Shown: positions 5,368-23,040 of the stretch, one piece after another | Numbering within the stretch: position 1 is the stretch's first letter | How the letters are laid out: every line of letters begins with the position of its first letter | Origin: Auanema rhodensis | Taxonomy: Eukaryota > Animalia > Nematoda | Assembly: GCA_964057225.1 (NCBI GenBank) | Contig: OZ059895.1 | Location: forward strand, 7,564,001-7,628,000 | Length of the DNA: 64,000 nt | Direction: 5' to 3' | The notes under the pieces: model-generated | Databases searched by the model: none | What the model was told of the DNA's origin: nothing | What the model saw: only the letters and a program-made list of their open reading frames with translations | Program-made: the position numbers and the translations under genes

Positions 5368-7124
5368 ATGGCAGAATTTGATTTAACGCAGAAGATGGTA
5401 CCTTTCTTCGATCTTCATTTGGTGATTCCTCTTCTGGAGTTCGTAGAACCTAGAAAAGTAGGATAGCTTTAAAAGCAGAGTTACGGTTCATAACATTTAG
5501 ATTTATGATGAGAAGTCTTTTATCGAAGTTCATAGAAGAGTTTTGAGAAAGACTAATATGATCGATAGCCTTATTGAAACCTATCCTGATGGCCAAATTC
5601 CCAAAGATCTTCAAGAGCGTAAAGCTGAAATTTTGAAGGAGAGAGATGCTTTCAAAGCTAAGGTAAGTGTTGCTGAAAAATTAATGATATCAAGTTTACA
5701 AAATTATTTTCTTCCTAGGTTGATCCAATTGTTGAAATTTTGGAACGCGAGGATGTAAAAGAACTTATGGAAAACACTCGTGAAAGAGATGGAAATAGCA
5801 AAATTCTTGATTTTCTTCAGCAAAACCATGAAGTATTGTTTCAGATGCCATATTTTAAGACTATATTATGTTTAGTTTACCGTTGATATGGTAGATACTC
5901 TCTTCAAATATGCCAAGTTCATGTACGAATGTGGAAACTACACTGCTGCCTCGGTAAATTAAAATTAGTAAAATTATTTTAACAATGCTTTCAGGTGTGT
6001 CTATATTACTATCGTAATCTCATCCCTCACACTGATAATAATTATCTCAATGCCTTATATGGAAAGCTTGCTAGTGAAATTCTTGTCCAGGTAATACAGT
6101 GTCAAAGAGCAATAGGATTTGTGCATTTTCTCTAGGAATGGGACCATGCACGGGACGATTTGGTCAAGCTTCGCGCTTACATCGACTCGAATCCTTTTGA
6201 TACTGAATGGGAACTTGTTCAGCAGCGTGCTTGGCTTATGCATTGGGCTTTGTTCGTATATTTTAATTATCCCAAGGGACGTGATGAGATTATTGAGATG
6301 TTCCTTAATCAACAAAACTATTTAAATACAATTCAAGTATAATGTTCTTAGTTTTTTTATATGAGCTTTGATATATTTAGGCTGTTAGTCCTCACCTTCT
6401 CCGCTATCTTGCTGTAGCTGTTGTTACTAGTAAAAATAAACAGAAAAACAGCCTCAAAGATCTCATCAAGGTTATTGATATCGTAAGTTGTTCTGTTTTA
6501 GTTCGGATTAAATGCTAACCCATTATCCAGGAACGTCATAACTATCAAGATCCAGTGACTGACTTCCTTACCTGTCTATACATCAAGTATGATTTTGATC
6601 AAGCTCAAGAAAAACTTCGTGAGTGTGAAGAAGTAAGTTGACCGTGTGTGGACTTAATTAAATTTATTTTTAAAGGTGTTATCTAACGATTTCTTCCTTA
6701 CTGCCTGTCTTCCTGATTTCCGTGAATCTGCCCGACTTCTTATTTTTGAGATGTTCTGCAGAATTCATCAGTGTATCAGTATTGAAATGCTGGCAAGAAG
6801 ATTGAATATGACTCAGGTGTAATGGAACTATTCTGATTTAATTATACATGTCTTTTGTAGGCCGAAGCTGAAAGGTGGATCGTAGATTTGATTCGTAACT
6901 ACCGCATTGAAGGAGCCAAGATTGATAGTAAATTAGGACAAGTAGTTATGGGCGTCAAAGCAGTAAGCATTCATGAACAGGTATATTTTTTTAGTTTACT
7001 TTTAAAAATGACAGAAATAAATGCTTAGGTGATGGAGAATACGAAACGTCTCACTCTCAGAACCCACACCATTGGATTGCAGTTAGAGAAGGCTCGAAAT
7101 GATCGAGGAAAAACTACGATCTAA
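5368..7124 (+). CDS. eif-3.E: Translation initiation factor 3 subunit E (INT6), multi-exon
   Basis: [89 protein letters not shown]. Acceptor ttttgtag lies just before the ATG. Confidence 0.96.
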
Positions 7125-7487
7125 ATGATATTGCGGATTCTTTTTTCTGTTTTTGTTTTAATTTGTTGGGCTGATACGCTTGTTTTCGTAATTTTTCTCT
7201 CTTTCGGACATCTGAAAAAATAAAATTCTAATCTTAATTACTGCTGATACCTTGTTGTTGATTGTTAGTTCCTACTATTATACTAAATGTATTTTCTTGT
7301 TGGAATATGAAGGTTTGTAAAAGATCGTTGAATTATAAGAAGATATGGTTTCTTTCCTGTCACATATGTATATATCATATATAATACATGAGAATAGCTC
7401 AACTTGAAAACTTATGTTTATTTTTAATGATTTAGAACTTTTTTCTAGTTTAAAAATAGAATAATTTGTGTTTTCACTTACAAAATA

Positions 7488-10400
7488 ATGACTTCATTAC
7501 GGGTAAATTAGTAGTTTTTTAACAATTTTATGAACAATTCTTTAGTTTATTCCTAAAACTGCGTATAATGTAGCTCTGGATGATTTAACTATGGCATCCA
7601 TTTTTGGAGATGACATTGAAGGAAATCAAATAACTAATGTACTTGCTCTTGAAGCTAAGCCGTTCGCTCTGATTGTTTTCGGGGAAAAATTAATGACGCG
7701 TGTAAGTAAATTTTGAAAGCTTTAGCTTTGTGGATGAAGTTCCTCTTTTAGATAAAAAATTTGCCTATTTATAAAAACATTATCAAATTATGTAAACAAT
7801 TTTTGAAATTTATAAAGTGCCAGAAGATTTCACTACGGTTTGAGTGGAAAATATTTGTTCAAATGTTATCTATTTCAGTGACGTACGATCATATCCTGCT
7901 GCTAAATCAAAAGAGAATTTTACGTTTGTTTTTCTTTCATTCTTTTGCAAAAAAGAATTTTTTATGAAGAAAGGGGATAGTAACTGAGAAATGTTTCAAT
8001 AATGTTGTAGCCTATACATATTCAAACTTATCAGCGTGGATGCAACCTTCTCAGCCGAATGTGAGTCATTTTTCCTAAAGCTTATTCAAACGATATTTCA
8101 GCTTTTTTGTAAAGCCATTTATGATAGATTGCTTAAATGGCAACCAGGGTATAGTTTCGTTGATTGTTCATTTCTACAGCATACTGAGCTTTTTGGTAAG
8201 AACTAGTTCACATGTAGCACGAGTAAAATTCAATATTAAGATTATTTCACAAGGTATTACCTGGATGATTGGGGTAAAATGGATATTACAACGAAATCTG
8301 AACTTATAAGTGCAATAGCTACGAATACATTTCGATTTAATGTTTGGTTTGTTCTAATGTCCTTGAGGTATTCGAGTTGGGACTTCTGAAAGAGCTTTGA
8401 CTTTTTTAGAAATGAGTTTTCCCTAGTATATGATACGTCAACTAAATTAGTACATTTCGGAAAACTGAAAACCAAAGTAGTTTTTCAATTTTCTGGAATA
8501 TTAACATATGTTCTTTTAGAAACTAATTTTGGCTGAAGAAAATAAAATAAAAAAGAAGCATTGCGAGTTGGCTATAGCTCAGTAAGCATGAGACTTAAAT
8601 TTAAGTTTTTGTTTCATTTTTTTCAGAATGTTGGAAAGTATTTCTCAAAACATTGAGGTTAGCAATTCATATGATCTTACACGCGGATTCATTTTAAATA
8701 ACTCTGGTATGAATTATCATGAAGTAATCAATACTAACGTTCTTTGATATTATTCAAATTTCTTATAGACGTTAAATTCACTTCAAGAACGCTTAACAAT
8801 GATCGTTGGTCCGTGCACTAGTATGATTTTCAATGTGTGGCACGTTAATTTTCCAAAATTCCAATGTATTTATAGAGACGTCCAATCTCATCTAAGCTGT
8901 GGGAAATCGTTAGGATTTTCAAAACTATAAAGGAATATCCTTTCCATTTGTTCGTTTTACTATCTATATGGTCCCTATGTTCAGTATACGCAATTTCAGG
9001 TCTGAATTTCTTTTTCCACCTTCACAAGATAAGGAATCATGCATGTGAGCTAAATCTCTTCAATATCTGAAACTTTAAGAATTTCAGAAGAAATTTCCTT
9101 TCTACTTCTGATTTGGAAAGACTGATTGTGAAATTCTTTAGGAAGAAATCTCTTCGGTTTTTTACCCCAAAAAAGAAGAGCGTATTTTATTGTTATAATT
9201 TCTGATATATATTCTCATATTTCAGGTTTTTATATTAGCTAAGAAAATAGCATTGAGATTCAATACTTGGAAATTATCAGAAGATTTTGTGGATGACACG
9301 TTGGAGAGTAGCTTTATTTATTTCGGTAAAGATGAACTTTATAACCGTATGCAGTAGTTTTCCATTTTCATGCAGGTTCCATCTTCAAATGTATACCTAA
9401 AGAACAACAGAAAAGCATTTATATGCATTCGGTTGCTTTTCATACATTCCGTTTCATGATCTATGTATTGCTAGTTACACTTCGGTAATGTTTTCATATC
9501 TCCATCTTATGCTTTTTGATATTCAAGCTCGATGTATACGACTGTTATTGGATCGAACAACACGGTCAGGTTCATTGCTGCTGGCCATTTTCCGGTATAT
9601 TCTTTACGTTGTTCTGTTGATTTTTTGTTTTTTTTTACAGAAAGTAATAGATGAAAGAGAATTACTTTCAACGGAAGTGTAAGTTTTTCTTTGATATATC
9701 TTTCTTTAAACTATCTTTTAAAGACCAAATAAAGAAACTATCGTTTCGAAACAAATTGAAAACGGAGAAGAAGATGGCAAATTAAAAAGAAAGAGAACGC
9801 GAAGCAAGTGCATTACCATGTAGGGGGTACTTCTAATTTTTTCTTTTTAAAATTGTGTTTCAGTCTTGATTCCCCGGAACCGGCTGCTAAAACCTCGAAG
9901 TTGGAACCAGCTCTTCCTTTATCGTATGTCATTTTGTTTTGAAGTAGAATGATAACGAATTTTTAAATATTTCAGAGTTAAACAAGAAGTGAATACTCAT
10001 AAATTTGATCTTAAAAAGGTTGGTGAATTATAATCTGTGTATCAAAATTATCTCTTTTAAGGTGAAACAAGAGAAAACAGACAAAACTCTTGCAACATCT
10101 GCACCTGTAACTAACCCTACTACCACTAATGCTGTAGATCTTTCTCGAGTTAAAAAGGAATCCATTAAATCAAGCTTCACAGCTGCTCCTTCTATAAATT
10201 CTGATGTATTTTTCGTTTTATATGCGATTTATAAAATTCTAATACATTTGTTTAGATTCCTGATGATAGATCTGACAAGAGTGAGGATATTACACGAGAT
10301 GTTGTAGATTTCAAACGTTTCAAAGCTGATATTGATGCTGATCCTAACATTCAAGCGGTGTATAAAACTATTTTTGGGTTTAATCTTATTTAATTTCACT

Positions 10401-10522
10401 TACTTTTCTATTATTGTTTCAGCTTAATCATTGACAATCGAGAAGCTCTTCGAACTCGTTATATAGATCTTCTGAAAGAAAATGCGAAATTAAAGGATAT
10501 TATACGGGCAATGGAAACTTAG
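7488..10522 (+). CDS. Orphan 'gene X' copy 1, ~24 exons, ~650 aa; possible degenerate ULP/SENP-like domain, NLS, SIM-like and psiKxE motifs, C-terminal coiled coil
   Basis: A continuous frame was rebuilt through GT-AG introns of about 40-65 nt, from MTSLR|FIPKTAYNVALDD to ...RYIDLLKENAKLKDIIRAMET*. The same exon structure is open in the paralog at 13223-16282. Confidence 0.75.
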
Positions 10523-10710
10523 TTGCCATAATTTACTGTTGTTGTTGTTGTTATTTTGTTTATTTTTTTTGTTTTGAAAGATACATTTATTTTCGTGGTT
10601 AGTTATATCAATAGTTTATATTGTTTTAATATTTCTGGTTTCGTTTCCTTATAATATTCAAATTCCGTTTTTCACTTTTGTTTTTTGATCAAAGTATTGA
10701 TTTCAGTAAT

Positions 10711-12537
10711 ATGCGGCGGATACATGAGGTAGTAACTAAGTCTGGAACATCTACAAGAGTTTTTAACTCTTTGAGATGCTCTTCATCATCTACAGAAACT
10801 ATTAATAGACCACCAAGTTACCGCAAGCCTCATCAACATCATAAGCCCAAGCATATGCTTCAAGAAGAATTTCCTGTAGAATTTTAGTATGTTTGAGTTT
10901 TCACATTTTTGATTTTAGAATGCTGGTGATGTTTCTGGAGCAGGGGTACGACTTTTTGACTATTATAAAACTGCTGATATGGTTAACCAACTTCCCACAA
11001 TTCAAGAGAAAATAGATTTTGTTAGTCCATATGAACGTCCTTGGACTCAAGCGGAAAAAACATGGCGCAGGTTTCTGCTAGATATTCAAGACAAATAATT
11101 AAGTTTTGATTCGCAGGGATTGGCATCCGTCTCTTATGTCTACCAGAAAGGCATGGGCCGTTCCGCAGGTCCCTTCATATTTCGATTGTTTGAAATTCTA
11201 TCAATATATCACAAAAACTAGAATTTGTGAAGAATCGTTAGATGAGCATTACAGAGATTTAGTTCCACCGACAGCTAGATTTGAGGTTTTTTTCTTTTTC
11301 AATATTTTGTAAAGAATGCTTATATAGGAAGCTATGATTGAGGCTCTTGGTCATATTATGAATTCTACTAGATTCGACAGTGAAGATGAACGAGTGAATT
11401 ATATAATTTCGACATTGATAGACGAAGGTCTGCAAAGTTTGGCTCATAATATGCCTCGTTTAGCCGATTATAGGGTTGCTCCCCTTTTTTGTAAATTTTA
11501 TAACTTTTATACTTTTAGTTGGCTTATGATGCCCAGAATGAATCATTCTGGATTAGATCTGGTTTTATGTTTCTTTACGATTTTCAAGAAATTGGAACTA
11601 GTAAAGTTATTCGTAAGCTTCATAATGCCCAAAAGTTCATAGGGGATGATAGGTTTTTTTTAAAGTTTTTTTTGTCTTTTTCATTATTCCAATTTACAGA
11701 AGGAAGCTGGGCGAATTAGCATTTGTTAGTAGAGATCAGTTCGCTGCACAAGTTCGATCAACTGAACAACCATCACCTTTATTCAGTCTTGAAAGTATAG
11801 AAAGCACCAGGGACTTGTTTTCCGACGATATAGACTTGAAAGAAGACGTTCTGTTCTCTCCTAAAGTTATGAATTTATGGCCCGATGCTGAACCGCTTTG
11901 GCAAAAACCTGGATATTTTGTCGAATCAGGAGAAACTCATTCTTACGGGCGCCTAGCAGGAAAATCGGTACATGCTATTAACGAACGGATGAGTATCTGG
12001 AATCCTGATGGTCCAGTTTCATAATTATAGACACATTACGTTTTGATTTTCTTTTAGAGGAAGAACGGTCTGCTATCTGGTTCGATTGCGCCAAAGCCCA
12101 AGCTGTATCTTCTCTCTTTACAACATTATGTGCTCAGGCTCATACTCATGGTATCTTAGACCTCTAATTCTACTGAATTATACTCTGAACTTTAGGATTT
12201 ACTCAATACACTGATGTAACGAGGCCATTCTCATCACAAATGATTCTATCCGATGGACAACAGTTTGTATTTGCTATTGGGCAACTAAATACGTTATCTA
12301 TCAATATCGATTGTGATGGTTAGAAACTCAGTTTAAAAGTTAATATTTTGTAATGTTTAAGGATTTGAAAATAATAGGACAAATTTCTGTCAAATAGAAA
12401 AGCCTTTGAACCTTTTTGATGCTTATGTTGATGGAAAGTTCTACTATCAGAAACAGGATGGTGAAAAGACTGAACTAGTTCCTGGATTAAATCGCCAGGT
12501 TCTATCACGAACATTGCAAATGATTATGAAGGACTAA
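10711..12537 (+). CDS. mrps-30: Mitochondrial ribosomal protein S30 (mL65), multi-exon
   Basis: SPYERPWTQAEKTWRRDWHPSLMSTRKAW, FYQYITKTRI, LVPPTARFE, AQNESFWIRSGFMFLYD, QAHTHGFTQYTDVTRPF. TTTCAG acceptor at 10701-10706. Confidence 0.92.
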
Positions 12538-12791
12538 GTTTTTTGTTATGTTCTTAGCATATCATTTCGTGAATTCGTGTACATACATAATTAGAATTGA
12601 AGCTTTCGATAGAAATATTGTTATTGTAGGTTATTTCAACTCTTAATCTATTTGTTGAAGTTTTTGTTATATATTCTACAGATAAATTCTACTATGTTGA
12701 AATGTATCTTTCATTTATACGCTCAAAATCGTTATATAATATTTAAGTCGTTATACATATAAACCCTGCTATTCCTCTAAGCAATTCCCTT

Positions 12792-12859
12792 TCAGAACCC
12801 ACACCATTGGATTGCAGTTAGAGAAGGCTCGAAATGATCGAGGAAAAACTACGATCTAA
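12792..12859 (+). pseudogene. Duplicated fragment encoding the last ~20 codons of eif-3.E
   Basis: Exact copy of 7057-7124 ([20 protein letters not shown]) without the upstream exons. Confidence 0.9.
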
Positions 12860-13222
12860 ATGATATTGCGGATTCTTTTTTCTGTTTTTGTTTTAATTTG
12901 TTGGGCTGATACGCTTGTTTTCGTAATTTTTCTCTCTTTCGGACATCTGAAAAAATAAAATTCTAATCTTAATTACTGCTGATACCTTGTTGTTGATTGT
13001 TAGTTCCTACTATTATACTAAATGTATTTTCTTGTTGGAATATGAAGGTTTGTAAAAGATCGTTGAATTATAAGAAGATATGGTTTCTTTCCTGTCACAT
13101 ATGTATATATCATATATAATACATGAGAATAGCTCAACTTGAAAACTTATGTTTATTTTTAATGATTTAGAACTTTTTTCTAGTTTAAAAATAGAATAAT
13201 TTGTGTTTTCACTTACAAAATA

Positions 13223-16200
13223 ATGACTTCATTACGGGTAAATTAGTAGTTTTTTAACAATTTTATGAACAATTCTTTAGTTTATTCCTAAAACTGCGTA
13301 TAATGTAGCTCTGGATGATTTAACTATGGCATCCATTTTTGGAGATGACATTGAAGGAAATCAAATAACTAATGTACTTGCTCTTGAAGCTAAGCCGTTC
13401 GCTCTGATTGTTTTCGGGGAAAAATTAATGACGCGTGTAAGTAAATTTTGAATTCTGTCTTATTCAAGCTTTAGCTTTGTGGATGAAGTTCCTCTTTTAG
13501 ATAAAGCATTTGCCTATTTATGATATTATTTTGGTTTTGTGCAAGGGCTATTTGACATTTATAAAGGGCCGGCATCTATCCTTGCAGTTGGGTTAGGTTT
13601 TAAATTCTTTTTAATTTTATCTATTTCAGTGACGTACCATCATATCCTGCTGCTAAATCAGAAGAGAATTTTAAGTTTGTTTTGTCTTTCATTCGTTTCA
13701 AAAGTATTTTTTATGAAGGAACGGGATAGTATCTGAGAAATGTTTCAATAATGTTGTAGCCTATACATATTCAAACTTATCAGCGTGGATGCAACCTTCT
13801 CAGCCGAATGTGAGTCATTTTTCCTAAAGCTTATTCAAACGATATTTCAGCTTTTTTGTAAAGCCATTTATGATAGATTGCTTAAATGGCAACCAGGGTA
13901 TAGTTTCGTTGATTTTTCATTACTAAAGCATACTGAGCTTTTTGGTAAGAACTAGTTCACATGTAGCACGAGTAAAATTCAATATTAAGATTATTTCACA
14001 AGTAAACAGCTGGATAATTGGGGTGAAATGGATATTAGAACGAAATCTGAACTTATAAGTGCAATAGCTACGAATACATTTCGATTTAATGTTTGGTTTG
14101 TTCTAATGTCCTTGAGGTATTCGAGTTGGGACTTCTGAAAGAGCTTTGACTTTTTTAGAAATGAGTTTTCCCTAGTATATGATACGTCAGCTAAATTAGT
14201 ACATTTCGGAAAACTGAAAACCAAAGTAGTTTTTCAATTTTCTGGAATATTAACATATGTTCTTTTAGAAATTGATAATATATTCCACTAGTTCTGGAAA
14301 TGCCGAAACCTATGAGTAAAAATTAAATTTTTCTTTTAAATTATAAAATTTCTCTTCAGAATACTGAAAGATATTCACCGTCACGTAAAGTATTGTAGAT
14401 CAGCTTACCATCTTACCTTTCCATTCATTTTCAACAACTTTGAAGTTGTATATCACGAGGTAATCAATAACCCACGTTCTTAATTTTATGCAAATTTCTT
14501 ACAGACGCTTACTTCACAAGGCCCATTATTAGAAATGCTTATTGGCCCATATATGACGAATTCGGTATGATTTTTCTTTTTTTCTGTTTTGTACTTAGTT
14601 TCAAGCATTTAACATCGGATGGTAGAGGATATTTCTCAGGAAAAATTTATGCCTTTGTGAGGAGAATACCATTATTTGTCACATACTTGTTCGTTTTACT
14701 ATCTATATGGTCCCTATGTTCAGTATACGCAATTTCAGGTCTGAATTTCTTTTTTCACCTTCACAAGATAAGGAATCATGCATGTGAGCTAAATCTCTTC
14801 AATATCTGAAACTTTAAGAATTTCAGAAGAAATCCCCTTTCTACTTTTGATTTGGAAAGACTGATTGGGAAGTTCTTTCAGAAATCTACGGATTCTTTTT
14901 TCTCCCCAAATAAAAAACACGTATTTTATTGTTATAATTTCTGATATATATTCTCATATTTCAGATTCCTGAATTAGCCCGAAAGATAGCAGCCAGATTT
15001 AATAATTGGAAATCATTAGAAGATTTTATTGATAAGACCTTGGAGAGTAGCTATGTCTATTTTGGTAATGATAAAGTTCATAACCTAAAGGGCTTCACTA
15101 GAAGTTTTTTTTACAGATGTCTTTGAGAGAGCCGATAAAAGCCAGCTGCCAAAGTTGTTTAAAAAGCGGTGTATGAATATTTATGCCAGTTCTCTTGCTT
15201 TACATACATTCCGTTTCATGATCTATGTATTGCTAGTTACACTTCGGTAATGTTTTCATATCTCCATCTTATGCTTTTTGATATTCAAGCTCGATGTATA
15301 CGACTGTTATTGGATCGAACAACACGGTCAGGTTCATTGGTGCTGGTCATTTTCCGGTATATTCTTTACGTTGTTCTGTTGATTTTTTGTTTTTTTATAG
15401 AATGTAATAGATGAAAAAGAATTACTTACAACTGAAGTGTAAGTTTTTCTTTGATATATCTTTCTTTAAACTATCTTTTAAAGACCAAATAAAGAAACTA
15501 TCGTTTCGAAACAAATTGAAAACGGAGAAGAAGATGGCAAATTAAAAAGAAAGAGAACGCAAAGCAAGTGCATTACCATGTAGGGGGTACTTCTAATTTT
15601 TTCTTTTCAAAATTGTGTTTCAGTCTTGATTCCCCGGAACCGGCTGCTAAAACCTCGAAGTTGGAACCAGCTCTTCCTTTATCGTATGTCATTTTGTTTT
15701 GAAGTAGAATGATAACGAATTTTTAAATATTTCAGAGTTAAACAAGAAGTGAATACTCATAAATTTGATCTTAAAAAGGTTGGTGAATTATAATCTGTGT
15801 ATCAAAATTATCTCTTTTAAGGTGAAACAAGAGAAAACAGACAATACTCTTGCAACATCTGCACCTGTAACTAACCCTGCTACCACTAATGCTGTAGATC
15901 TTTCTCGAGTTAAAAAGGAATCCATTAAATCAAGCTTCACAGCTGCTCCTTCTATAAATTCTGATGTATTTTTCGTTTTATATGCGATTTATAAAATTCT
16001 AATACATTTGTTTAGATTCCTGATGATAGATCTGACAAGAGTGAGGATATTACACGAGATGTTGTAGATTTCAAACGTTTCAAAGCTGATATTGATGCTG
16101 ATCCTAACATTCAAGCGGTGTATAAAACTATTTTTGGGTTTAATCTTATTTAATTTCACTTACTTTTCTATTATTGTTTCAGCTTAATCATTGACAATCG

Positions 16201-16282
16201 AGAAGCTCTTCGAACTCGTTATATAGATCTTCTGAAAGAAAATGCGAAATTAAAGGATATTATACGGGCAATGGAAACTTAG
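13223..16282 (+). CDS. Orphan 'gene X' copy 2 (intact paralog with a divergent central region)
   Basis: Same exon-intron architecture as copy 1. The frame stays open through divergent exons such as IKHLPIYDIILVLCKGYLTFIKGRHLSLH and ILKDIHRHVKYCRSAYHLTFPFIFNNFEVVYHE. The C-terminus is identical, with TAG at 16280-16282. Confidence 0.75.
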
Positions 16283-16409
16283 TTGCCATAATTACTGTTG
16301 TTGTTGTTGTTGTTATTTTGTTCTGTTATAATGATTTTCGGATAACAGATCTACTAATTGATCCAGAATCGTTCATATTCATAGTGCATCAAGCAGTTCC
16401 TGACTATGT

Positions 16410-16729
16410 ATCTGAAAAAATAAAATTCTAATCTTAATTACTGCTGATACCTTGTTGTTGATTGTTAGTTCCTACTATTATACTAAATGTATTTTCTTGT
16501 TGGAATATGAAGGTTTGTAAAAGATCGTTGAATTATAAGAAGATATGGTTTCTTTCCTGTCACATATGTATATATCATATATAATACATGAGAATAGCTC
16601 AACTTGAAAACTTATGTTTATTTTTAATGATTTAGAACTTTTTTCTAGTTTAAAAATAGAATAATTTGTGTTTTCACTTACAAAATAATGACTTCATTAC
16701 GGGTAAATTAGTAGTTTTTTAACAATTTT
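16410..16729 (+). repeat. Third copy (320 nt) of the eif-3.E polyA/intergenic region plus gene X exon 1
   Basis: Matches 7210-7529 (offset 9200) and 12945-13264. Includes the AATAAA and the ATG ACT TCA TTA CGG|gtaaat first exon at 16688. Confidence 0.95.
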
Positions 16730-16808
16730 TTGTAATATCTGAATTCCGCTCTTCACTTTTGTTTCTTTGATCGATATCTTTATATTATTTTATTATTATT
16801 TATTCAGA

Positions 16809-18406
16809 ATGAGAAATAAAATAAAAAAGGGTTTGGTGATATTAGCGGTTTGCATTTCTGTGATTCTATTTTGGTGCGAATTTCTGGTTTATCCATTTCA
16901 TCTATATGTGTGCTCTAAAGGTTTTGAGGGAATTAAAAAGTAAGTTATATTAAATTTATGATTTATAAGTTATATTAGAAATACCAATGATGAACTCAAT
17001 GTTATAATGATTTCTGATACTCATATTCTCGGGAAATTTAAGGGTCATTGGTTTGATAGAATTAGGAGGTTTTAATACAATAAATTTATTCTCTCTTTAC
17101 ACTGTTTTAAGAGAATGGCAAATGTCTAGCTCATTTACGCAAGCTGTGAAATGGCTCCAACCTGAAGCTGTTTTCTTTTTAGGTATTATATGTTGACTAA
17201 TGTTTTTTTATTGTTATTCAAACATTGCTACAGGAGATTTAATGGACGAAGGTCAATGGACAGATGAAAACTTATTCAATGAATATGCCGATAGATTTTT
17301 CAAAGTTTTCAATAACCAGACAGCGGGACCTACTATGTATTTTATTCCTGGAAATCATGATTTAGGATTTCATTTTGAGTAAATCTATATGTTAACAACA
17401 TTAATAATCTCTTTATAATTAGAATACATCCTGAACGTATAAAATGGTTCAAAAAACGTTTTGATGTCGACTCTGTTAATATTTTGAATATAAAAGGTAC
17501 TCATTATTTAATAATAATAACTTATTATTTATAGGATTTCCCTTTGTGACGATTAATTCTATGGCCATGCATGGTGATAAATGTAGATTATGTGCTGGTG
17601 CATTGAATTTAATGGAAACATATTCAAAAATCTTTGATTGTGCTGCTAATGAATCTTGCACATCATACCCAGAATCTGAATTAAATCGCCCTTTTATAAA
17701 GCCTATAGTTCTTCAGCATTTTCCTTTATTTAGGTAAATTAATTCATATTATTTTTATTATATTTTTTTTTGTTTCAGAACAAATGAAAATGTTTGTATG
17801 CGGGATGAAGATTTTGATGAACTAGCACCTGACCGTGATGAGCATTACCGAGAAAAGTGGGAATGTCTCTCTAAAGAATCAACTCAGTGGGTATCTTCTT
17901 ATAAGCTTGAATTTCATGTTTGTCGTAGATATATTCTGGAAAAAATCCAACCGAGAGCTGTTTTTGATGGCCATGCACATCGTGGATGTAAGAGGAAGTA
18001 AATTACTTTATATAATTTGCAATTAAGTATATTTATTTGAGATGGACTTCTCCAACTGAATTTTATGAGTACACTCAAAATTCTTTTAACTGGAGAAATA
18101 ATGACGTTCCTACAATTTTAATGGTTAGTATCGACAAAGATAGAGTAAGTTTATTGTTTTTTCAATGATTATTGACAGATAATATTTTTTTCGGCTGAAA
18201 AAGTTTTATTTCAAGATTTTTATTTTTTAAATCTTTTTCAGGTTGATGTAAAAACCTGCTATCTTCCTAGAGAATCTTTTATTTTTGTTGGATACTTTTT
18301 TATAATTCTTTTTATATTAATATTTTTTCAATACGTTTTAATGCTTTGTCTTAAAATTAAATCTCATTCTACTGATCTTCGATTACTTTCGACTAAACAC
18401 GAGTAA
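16809..18406 (+). CDS. Metallophosphoesterase 1 (MPPE1/PGAP5/Cdc1-like), multi-exon
   Basis: N-terminal TM, metallophosphoesterase motifs ISDTHILG, GDLMDEG, PGNHDLG, LQHFPL and FDGHAH, then SFNWRN and a C-terminal TM. Confidence 0.92.
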
Positions 18407-21400: not shown

Positions 21401-22190
21401 AGCCGAAAGAGGACGACCACCACGTTGTCTTTTGATGTCATTTCTTATCTAAATGGCGTTCCTCGTTATTCTTTTGAAATTTTCTATTCCCCCCCCCTTT
21501 TTTTCTGACAATGATTATGTGCTTACCCAATCATTCACATCAATGGGGTCGTTACGACAATGTCTTCGCTTCTGCGATTCATTTTGTGTCTTTTATAACG
21601 ATCAGACAGTATACCGAAGTTATTTTCTTCCGAATGTCCTTTTTAACTACTTCGATTGCTTAATGATTCTCAACATATATCTTTGTAAATCTTTAAAGTC
21701 ATTGTCGACATGCTTGACGTGCTTTGTGTATATGGATATTTCAACTGTTCAGTCAAATACTGCAAATAGAAGAAACCAACCTTTTTCGTTTATATCATCT
21801 GAAAACATGTCTTCACATATCTTTTTCCATTTCTTCGTTTAACTTATAGTGTTATTTCATTCAAAATTTGTATGAAATGCATTATATTCGATTGTAAAAC
21901 TATGTTTTTTCTTGAACAAAGTTTTGAAATTCAGTCTAAATATTCAATTTAACTACCTTTTATGTCTTATATTTCTATGTTTTTTTATATTTTTTATAAA
22001 AACTATGAAATAGAGTCATGTTACGAACTTTATAATAGAACTGGATTCTGATGACGTTTATTCATTATCACCCGTAGGGCATGATGAGTCCTGATCTCTT
22101 CATCGTTTATCAATTTTCTTTTTCGATGTGAGAAGATGTCTATTTCATAAGCAAATGTTTATGTTTTTTCTTTTTTTTCTTTGCCCCCCC

Positions 22191-22193
<3 letters not shown>

Positions 22194-22260
<67 letters not shown>
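22194..22260. repeat. (CT)n microsatellite
   Basis: About 33 uninterrupted CT units. Confidence 0.97.
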
Positions 22261-22262
<2 letters not shown>

Positions 22263-22954
22263 TCTGTCTTTCAACCCTGTCTTTCAACCTTTTTTCAAAG
22301 TTTTTTTTCTATTATTTCAAAAAAAATTTTACTTTAAACGATTGAAAAAATAAAATTTTTTTCTACATTCCTCGAGAAAATTCATACAATATACATATAT
22401 GTCGTTATAGTCAACCTCTTCTTTTGCTGTCGTTTTGATCATCCCATAATCGCCTCGTTGTCCTCAACTCTTTTCTTTTCTGACGCCTTTCAAAGAATTC
22501 TTCAAATCACATAATTCACAGTGAACGGTTATCGCAACTCTGTCAGCCATGTCATCCTTTATTTCTCCTTACCTGTTTGACTGATCCAACAAAAGTAACC
22601 ATAAGCCTTTTTAAACGGAAGAGGAGCTTAACTGCTTTATCCCATAACTTTTTTCTGTCATTCTTCTTTAAAGTTTCATTTGAAATTTTAGTTGAAAGAT
22701 AGAATAGAAAAAAGAAAACTGTAGTTATTATTCTGAGACAAAGTTTTTTTTTCTTTGAAAAATTTAAAATTATTAATAATCTTCAAGATTGGAATATTTG
22801 CTGAACTTATAAAGATATTACCAGTAAGTCGGATATAGCTTTAGTGCCTACAACATCCAGTTTTCTATAACTATAAAGTATATTATCATGACTGGTTTCA
22901 CACAATGTCTCTCTTTTTGCTATGATCACTCACATATATTCTTTATATATCTTA

Positions 22955-23040
22955 CTCTCTCTCTTTCTTTCTTTCTTTCTCTCTCACTCCCTCTCTCTCT
23001 CTTTCTCTCTCTCACTCTCTTACCCCCTCTCTCTCTCTCT
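22955..23040. repeat. Imperfect CT-rich simple repeat
   Basis: Degenerate (CT)n/(CTTT)n tract. Confidence 0.85.

Follow-up and report, generated by a model that had tools for sequence, protein, structure and literature searches.

Mosaic of identical and divergent segments in a duplicated gene within the eif-3.E/mrps-30 cluster of Auanema rhodensis

Why should the exons of a duplicated gene differ more between its two copies than the introns that separate them? This question was raised by a stretch of 64,000 nucleotides (nt) of the nematode Auanema rhodensis (GenBank assembly GCA_964057225.1, contig OZ059895.1, positions 7,564,001 to 7,628,000), hereafter called the window, in whose own numbering all positions are given. 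Here a gene of no recognised family, called X in this text, lies in two copies (X1 and X2) among the housekeeping genes eif-3.E, mrps-30 and an MPPE1-like gene. A first-pass annotation had described X as a duplicated, fast-evolving orphan gene and had proposed a selfish or genetic-conflict locus. Its observation was partly confirmed and proved largely right, and its interpretation was partly supported. We consider it fairly probable that X1 and X2 are an old paralog pair, partly homogenised by interlocus gene conversion, in which several islands have resisted homogenisation.

The duplication of gene X

Self-BLAST of the window showed that 7051-10560 recurs at 12786-16322 with 79-98% identity, depending on the piece. 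The identity between the copies was 94.5% over 7051-8522, 79-87% in pieces within 8687-9346, and 98% over 9422-10560. The left edge of the duplication falls within the last eif-3.E exon (7029-7124) and not in an intron. A search of the 181-Mb genome with the X sequence and a repeated cassette of ~320 nt found no further copies beyond this locus. The gene order, all on the + strand, is eif-3.E, X1, mrps-30, a copy of the eif-3.E 3' end, X2, a third cassette of 323 nt, and the MPPE1-like gene. The double occurrence of X in this order had been noted before, and both self-BLAST and the Pfam matches of the neighbours confirmed it. The coding-to-coding spacings along the cluster had been given as about 190-690 nt; they are 466, 188, 788, and 526 nt.

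A duplicated gene of this kind could be an assembly artefact or a pair of collapsed haplotypes, with only one X and a mis-joined allele as the second copy. The long perfect identities (one of 660 nt and three copies of 320 nt) are indeed the kind of sequence that assemblers mishandle. RNA and DNA contigs of independent runs were compared over 8690-14689, which includes the X1-specific part, mrps-30, the junction at 12786, and the X2-specific part. Two of these runs were recognised as RNA by their GT..AG joints. DNA contigs of another study matched the X1-specific 8690-8977 and the X2-specific 14353-14619 with zero differences. The 12786 junction was bridged by a DNA contig (12596-12821) and by an mrps-30 RNA contig (12361-12821), so that RNA also links mrps-30 to the cassette. 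The left junction of the third cassette was found as a loose end at 12945 in two DNA runs (X3 and X5). At position 9578, both copy states were present at a ratio of about 1:1 (243/528) in one DNA run. Because independent contigs, among them DNA runs of other studies, carry the copy-specific parts of both genes and both novel junctions, the duplicated structure is genuine and both copies are real. The artefact reading is largely refuted, and we regard it as very improbable.

Copy-specific sequence of both X1 and X2 was present, at least in part, in all three organisms sampled (A, B, and C), which are few samples. At a 95% likeness cut, the DNA contigs of organism C had a hole around exon 12 in X1 (8890-9089) and another at the homologous place in X2 (14490-14689). 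These holes may represent strain-level hypervariability or may merely be contig gaps. A (TGT)n microsatellite directly follows the X stop codon in both copies (10535-10560 and 16295-16322), at the right end of the well-aligned duplication, and RNA and DNA contigs break there.

The exons of X were predicted for each copy separately by a small splice and codon model, which was trained on introns shown by RNA and used an intron-length prior (42-52 nt seen here). An earlier gene model with micro-exons of 10-26 nt and a 122-nt intron was dropped, and the intron-length prior was then added. An apparent exon end at the RNA joint 9483 was also rejected, as it is a unitig break where X1 and X2 diverge. 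The final models have 24 exons each at homologous positions, with open frames and introns that are all GT..AG and 41-64 nt long. At least six X1 introns were shown as RNA joints (starting at 9485, 9820, 9924, 10019, 10206, and 10378), and the model recovered all of them, as well as two more introns implied by an X2-type RNA contig. Eight RNA joints correspond to all eight introns of mrps-30. Beyond the joints listed, 19 were predicted by the model within 8690-14689 compared to 21 counted in the RNA. All five exon-length differences between X1 and X2 are multiples of 3, compared to none of the six intron-length differences. The G+C content is 34-36% in the modelled exons and 26-27% in the introns.

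RNA depth was found on the copy-specific parts of both X1 and X2 (for X2, 14290-14689), and one RNA contig carries the X2 version of exon 18. Therefore, both genes are transcribed. The earlier description of two intact copies with about 24 exons each was thus borne out by the gene models, the frames, and the RNA. Between the acceptor at 7544 and the main start codon (ATG at 7591), the X leader (7545-7590) has two minimal upstream open reading frames, ATG-TAG and ATG-ATT-TAA, which are the same in both copies. An RNA contig over X exon 1 (run X11, 13280-13440) bears 68 extra letters upstream of the acceptor, which do not match the adjacent DNA (13212-13279). The letters may come from a leader exon or from a spliced leader joined to some further sequence.

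Identity and divergence between X1 and X2

Across the alignment of X1 and X2, 13% of the columns differ, and they are distributed as a mosaic. Identical runs of 660, 414, 236, 182, and 151 nt were found, compared to a maximum of 101 nt in 2000 shuffles. The 534 nt upstream, exon 1, intron 1, introns 4-8, introns 12-14, and intron 16 hold no substitution; the sole difference among them is one of 14 nt in the length of intron 1. Between these stretches lie three islands of divergence (Table 1), where synonymous (dS) and nonsynonymous (dN) divergence was estimated. Island 2 begins where intron 8 meets exon 9 and ends where exon 12 meets intron 12, and its exon-length differences (-15, +3, -6, and +9) are all multiples of 3. 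Island 3 is interrupted by intron 14 (44 nt, 9182-9225), which is fully identical. The other introns of the islands, namely introns 2, 9, 10, 11, and 15, are 29-54% diverged.

The duplication appears to be old, because the islands have dS values from 0.67 to saturated and diverged internal introns, and because the flank of the copies is unalignable. The dN/dS ratio within the islands is ~0.2-0.45. These values point to an old divergence of the islands, with the protein constrained there. The identical stretches would therefore represent recent homogenisation, that is, interlocus gene conversion. The earlier characterisation of X as fast-evolving did not hold for the bulk of the divergence, which appears old and constrained.

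Some of the sites that distinguish X1 from X2 in the assembly showed a single state at doubled depth in the DNA of another strain, namely 13915, 13922, 13926, and 14190 (X1-like) and 10085 and 10119 (X2-like). These sites are suggestive of continuing gene conversion, within the limits that cross-mapping of contigs sets to such a reading. Every difference private to the reference, compared to other strains, changes an amino acid: two in X1 exon 22 (K/N and T/A, at 10085 and 10119) and three in X2 exon 6 (13915-13926).

The homogenised part contains 25 nonsynonymous and 3 synonymous differences, a count that is not significant by itself (p = 0.11). When expressed per site, nonsynonymous differences in the low-divergence part amount to 25/939 (2.7%) compared to 8/1073 (0.75%) at neutral sites, which include synonymous sites and introns (p = 7e-4). 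Overall, exons are more diverged than introns (15.0% vs 8.9%, p = 2e-6), and in the middle of the gene 9 of 16 introns are without any difference, compared to 1 of 17 exons (p = 0.002). The excess of amino-acid changes beside identical introns is located in exons 3-8 and in the 3' exons. Thus, the amino-acid-biased divergence described in the first-pass annotation was recovered in the homogenised part, where introns are mostly identical, but not in the islands, where introns have diverged as well and dN/dS is well below 1.

Table 1. Coordinates of the features in the window (dS, synonymous divergence; dN, nonsynonymous divergence).
Feature	Position	Strand	Description
X1 coding region	7591-10522	+	24 exons, 631 amino acids; own gene model and RNA joints
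X2 coding region	13326-16282	+	24 exons, 635 amino acids, 78% identical to X1; own gene model
Divergence island 1	7757-7870	+	Exon 2 from its 6th base and intron 2; 34% and 32% different; dS 1.1, dN 0.34
Divergence island 2	8521-8949	+	Exons 9-12 and introns 9-11; 29-64% different; dS saturated, dN 0.71
Divergence island 3	9129-9440	+	3' half of exon 14, exon 15, intron 15, 5' half of exon 16; 26-40% different; dS 0.67, dN 0.29
Cassette copy 1	7057-7590	+	Last 21 eif-3.E codons and stop, 3' untranslated region (AATAAA 7219), ~305 nt of intercistronic DNA to acceptor TTTAG 7540-7544
Cassette copy 2	12792-13325	+	eif-3.E coding tail, poly(A) signal 12954, intercistronic DNA
Cassette copy 3 (partial, 323 nt)	16410-16732	+	Equals 7210-7532 at 100%; poly(A) signal 16419, then intercistronic DNA; follows X2 and precedes the MPPE1-like gene
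~45-nt motif	10651-10700, again 16733-16780	+	Just upstream of the mrps-30 and MPPE1-like acceptors
eif-3.E (eIF3 subunit e)	5368-7124	+	Last exon 7029-7124, stop TAA 7122-7124; Pfam and reading frames
mrps-30 (mitochondrial ribosomal protein S30)	10711-12537	+	9 exons; eight RNA joints give an open translation; PDCD9
MPPE1-like metallophosphoesterase gene	16809-18165	+	Start ATG 16809; Metallophos exon match; 3' end approximate

Explanations for the mosaic

In the explanation that we favour, the duplicated unit would have extended from inside the last eif-3.E exon, via the poly(A) site, the intercistronic DNA and X, probably to just before the acceptor of the next gene. Repeated interlocus gene conversion would then have made the copies alike in most introns and the 3' third of X, as well as in exon 1 and the cassette upstream of it. 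Selection for paralog-specific protein segments, which opposes conversion, would have kept three islands apart (exon 2, exons 9-12, and exons 14-16), and the X1 and X2 proteins would have partly separate roles. The few differences within the homogenised parts would be mostly amino-acid changes for the same selective reason, perhaps with positive selection in addition. The copied eif-3.E 3' cassette would now provide mrps-30 with its 3' end and X2 with its upstream region, and a third copy precedes the MPPE1-like gene.

Several known systems resemble this pattern. Conversion tracts between Caenorhabditis paralogs range from 12 to 2958 nt, mostly 50-200 nt, extend into introns, and are opposed by divergent selection (PMC3966223); the island sizes found here (182 nt and 45 nt) fall within these tract lengths. 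Like X, the Caenorhabditis pairs (fog-2/ftr-1, the zim/him-8 cluster, col-12/col-13, and hsp-16; PMC3966223) lie on the same strand a few kb apart and are mosaics of near-identical tracts and old divergence, with tracts of tens to hundreds of nt running through short introns. Unlike those pairs, X1 and X2 have a housekeeping gene between them, their islands are unusually sharp and exon-centred, and their family is unrecognised. In the primate L/M opsin genes, introns are more alike than exons. Islands of divergence that persist against conversion have been described (PMC3728101, PMC3924837), and in the GOT1 paralogs of Tigriopus (PMC3728101; theory in PMC3924837), as in X, introns and silent sites are homogenised and coding segments differ, mostly by amino-acid changes. 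Compared to Tigriopus GOT1 and the opsins, the contrast is much stronger in X, where introns with 0% difference lie beside exons with 26-62%, and no known function explains the exon differences. The locus is best classed with other cases of concerted evolution in which islands are protected, and it is an unusually clear one. Conversion and selection may jointly make exons seem faster-evolving than introns, a pattern that can be mistaken for runaway positive selection or a conflict locus. The three protected islands would mark where the X1 and X2 proteins must differ, and would offer a handle on the function of an unrecognisable, probably nuclear, protein.

A number of points weigh against this explanation. 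Conversion tracts that end at random would not give sharp edges, and the explanation requires a large number of short tracts on which selection has acted as a filter. Of the eight block boundaries, five are no more than 5 nt away from a splice junction (p = 0.007), and the perfect intron 14 stands between two very divergent exons. Eight differences cluster within 37 nt of exon 7, all of them nonsynonymous and none synonymous. Some real positive selection is likely, because a plain unconverted relic at exon 7 should show synonymous changes too. Furthermore, both the age and the direction of conversion are drawn from one genome plus contigs of close strains, and the 5' two-thirds of the X gene model rests on our own predictor. 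The nonsynonymous excess would be what conversion leaves where selection keeps paralog-specific residues, and it is the same excess that positive selection gives. The sharp edges and the exon 7 cluster somewhat exceed the simple model and leave room for true positive selection or for an exon-segment process.

The conflict locus of the first-pass annotation would be a young, lineage-specific X under diversifying selection, such as a toxin-antidote element, a drive suppressor or a defence gene, with a recent duplication and fast exons. The higher divergence of exons than of introns, the unchanged introns in the middle of the gene, and the nonsynonymous excess of the low-divergence part all speak for it, as do the absence of Pfam and PDB matches for the exon queries and of a paralog elsewhere in the genome. 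The organism C holes over exon 12 of both copies could mean strain hypervariability, but a coverage hole proves nothing, and all three organisms have contigs on copy-specific sequence of both copies. The divergent exons, with their dS of 0.67 to saturated and dN/dS < 0.5, and the diverged introns of the blocks weigh more heavily, because selection alone cannot yield such values soon after a duplication. X carries 23 introns in a coding sequence of 1.9 kb, twice the intron density of mrps-30, which argues against a young gene and suggests that X is old rather than newly born. Toxin-antidote elements such as peel-1/zeel-1 and sup-35/pha-1 join two genes that are unrelated to each other; their haplotypes differ by presence/absence or are hyperdivergent, and the killing depends on the parent of origin. 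X shares with them its setting in a nematode and the tight linkage of genes without a recognisable family. X1 and X2, however, are paralogs of each other (78% identical) that share one arrangement of 24 exons, and their neighbours encode eIF3e, MRPS30, and a metallophosphoesterase. With paralogs that are each at least partly present in every sampled strain, and with a divergence that appears mostly old and constrained, a selfish or conflict locus was not supported, and we consider it unlikely.

The close fit of several boundaries to splice junctions would be expected if, after a recent duplication, a mutational process rather than selection against conversion had rewritten particular exons, either by replacing segments of them or by targeting mutations to them, as in the accelerated segment switch in exons proposed for snake toxins. 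The perfect identity of intron 14 and of introns 12-13 beside exons that are 26-62% different points in the same direction. However, three boundaries fall within exon 14, exon 16 or intron 2, and divergence has also affected introns 2, 9-11, and 15. The exons keep their length class, phase, and scattered anchors (such as YHETL and splice-proximal bases), as in slow divergence and unlike the insertion of unrelated sequence. To our knowledge, no such mechanism exists in nematodes. Exon-segment switching has been described for venom genes (PMC2711939, PMC2474615), in which exons or segments differ radically and adjacent introns are conserved, as in X. Unlike the snake venom genes, X has no signal peptide, looks nuclear, has some diverged introns, and shows dN/dS < 1 in its divergent exons. 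We assign replacement a low probability. Little credence is given to a third possibility, in which X1 and X2 would be a co-evolving self/non-self or toxin-antidote-like pair whose exon-delimited specificity cassettes are rewritten or protected from conversion. If it were true, the locus would be a nematode counterpart of venom exon-segment switching inside a housekeeping operon.

The copied cassette, the gene cluster, and the X protein

Cassette copies 1 and 2 show 0 differences in 534 nt, and a core of ~320 nt is 100% identical in three places (7210-7529, 12945-13264, and 16410-16729). The copy of the eif-3.E coding tail (12792-12859) holds the last 21 codons. Cassette copy 3 begins 9 nt before the equivalent of the AATAAA at 7219 and ends just before the equivalent of the X acceptor. 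This third fragment had been described as an eif-3.E 3' cassette with X exon 1. The cassette with its poly(A) signal and intercistronic DNA is present, but it lacks both the coding tail of eif-3.E (7057-7124) and exon 1 of X (7591-7701). The ~320-nt triple repeat was rejected as a mobile element or an RNA gene, as its only three copies in the genome are all at this locus. It gave no Rfam or tRNA match, and its predicted fold was no better than that of shuffles (z = -0.36).

The eif-3.E RNA contig ends at ~7239, a position taken from its counterpart 12974, where the RNA contig 12792-12974 stops; the loose end of the RNA at 12792 carries the eif-3.E exon sequence 7028-7057. The mrps-30 transcript extends at least ~285 nt past its stop codon and over 12786, where it runs into the unitig (12792-12974) that also represents the 3' end of eif-3.E. 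The RNA depth of this shared unitig was 248, about twice the 121 of the mrps-30 contig; judged against the mrps-30 depth only, this doubling would fit two transcripts sharing the unitig. No canonical AATAAA was found between the mrps-30 stop codon and 12786. We infer that the copied poly(A) site of eif-3.E (AATAAA 12954) is probably where mrps-30 ends. Cassette copy 2 probably serves mrps-30 as its 3' untranslated region and terminator, and X2 as its upstream region. A duplication can thus carry a ready-made 3'-end and intercistronic cassette and rewire a nematode gene cluster, as mrps-30 appears to end in the copy of the eif-3.E 3' end.

The flanks between X and the next gene are unalignable between the copies except for a motif of ~45 nt, which reads AATTCCGYTYTTCACTTTTGTTT..TTTGATC and occurs nowhere else in the window. 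This motif may be what is left of the former right end of the duplicated unit, or it may be a control element common to both genes. The original unit probably ran from 7051 to ~10700, because the motif recurs before the MPPE1-like gene and is preceded by unalignable sequence of equal length. The 323-nt third cassette would be a later, very recent insertion.

The neighbouring genes were assigned by Pfam matches of their exons. The eif-3.E exons match eIF3_N and PCI (5368-6992), those of mrps-30 (10919-12534) match PDCD9, which is the family of mitochondrial ribosomal protein S30, and an exon of the MPPE1-like gene matches Metallophos (17197-17379). The cluster fits an operon layout, as its genes share one strand and are closely spaced: the eif-3.E poly(A) site precedes the X acceptor by ~305 nt, and the mrps-30 ATG follows the X1 stop codon after 188 nt. 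The earlier proposal that X uses operon expression signals fits this layout, as each duplication carried the eif-3.E 3' end with the intercistronic cassette.

The X protein consists of an N-terminal body of ~445 amino acids, a nuclear-localisation-like KRKR motif at amino acid 465, a low-complexity linker, and a short coiled-coil-like or helical C-terminal tail; no signal-like segment was seen at its N-terminus. This composition suggests, as a guess, a nuclear protein. Homology searches used single exon pieces as queries, not the full spliced protein. With 20 exon pieces, Pfam gave no credible family and only two single sub-threshold matches (bZIP_2, E 0.031; DUF7228, E 0.14); neighbour-gene exons of similar size gave clear Pfam matches. 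With phmmer, exon 7 gave no match in a set of 1.84 billion representative proteins, and a PDB sequence search with three exons returned only chance-level SAMD9 matches. The Peptidase_C48 (ULP1/SENP) profile matched none of the exons up to E 10, these pieces being short.

The gene between eif-3.E and mrps-30 in C. elegans is cdc-26. C. elegans CDC-26 has 175-187 amino acids and a conserved N-terminal pattern of charged and hydrophobic residues (PMC1847674). X was rejected as cdc-26, as X1 has 631 amino acids and its N-terminus is not Cdc26-like by eye. A literature search for papers naming B0511.12 gave nothing useful. Elsewhere in the window, short imperfect tandem repeats were seen by self-BLAST at 22164-23040, where the GC skew turns negative.

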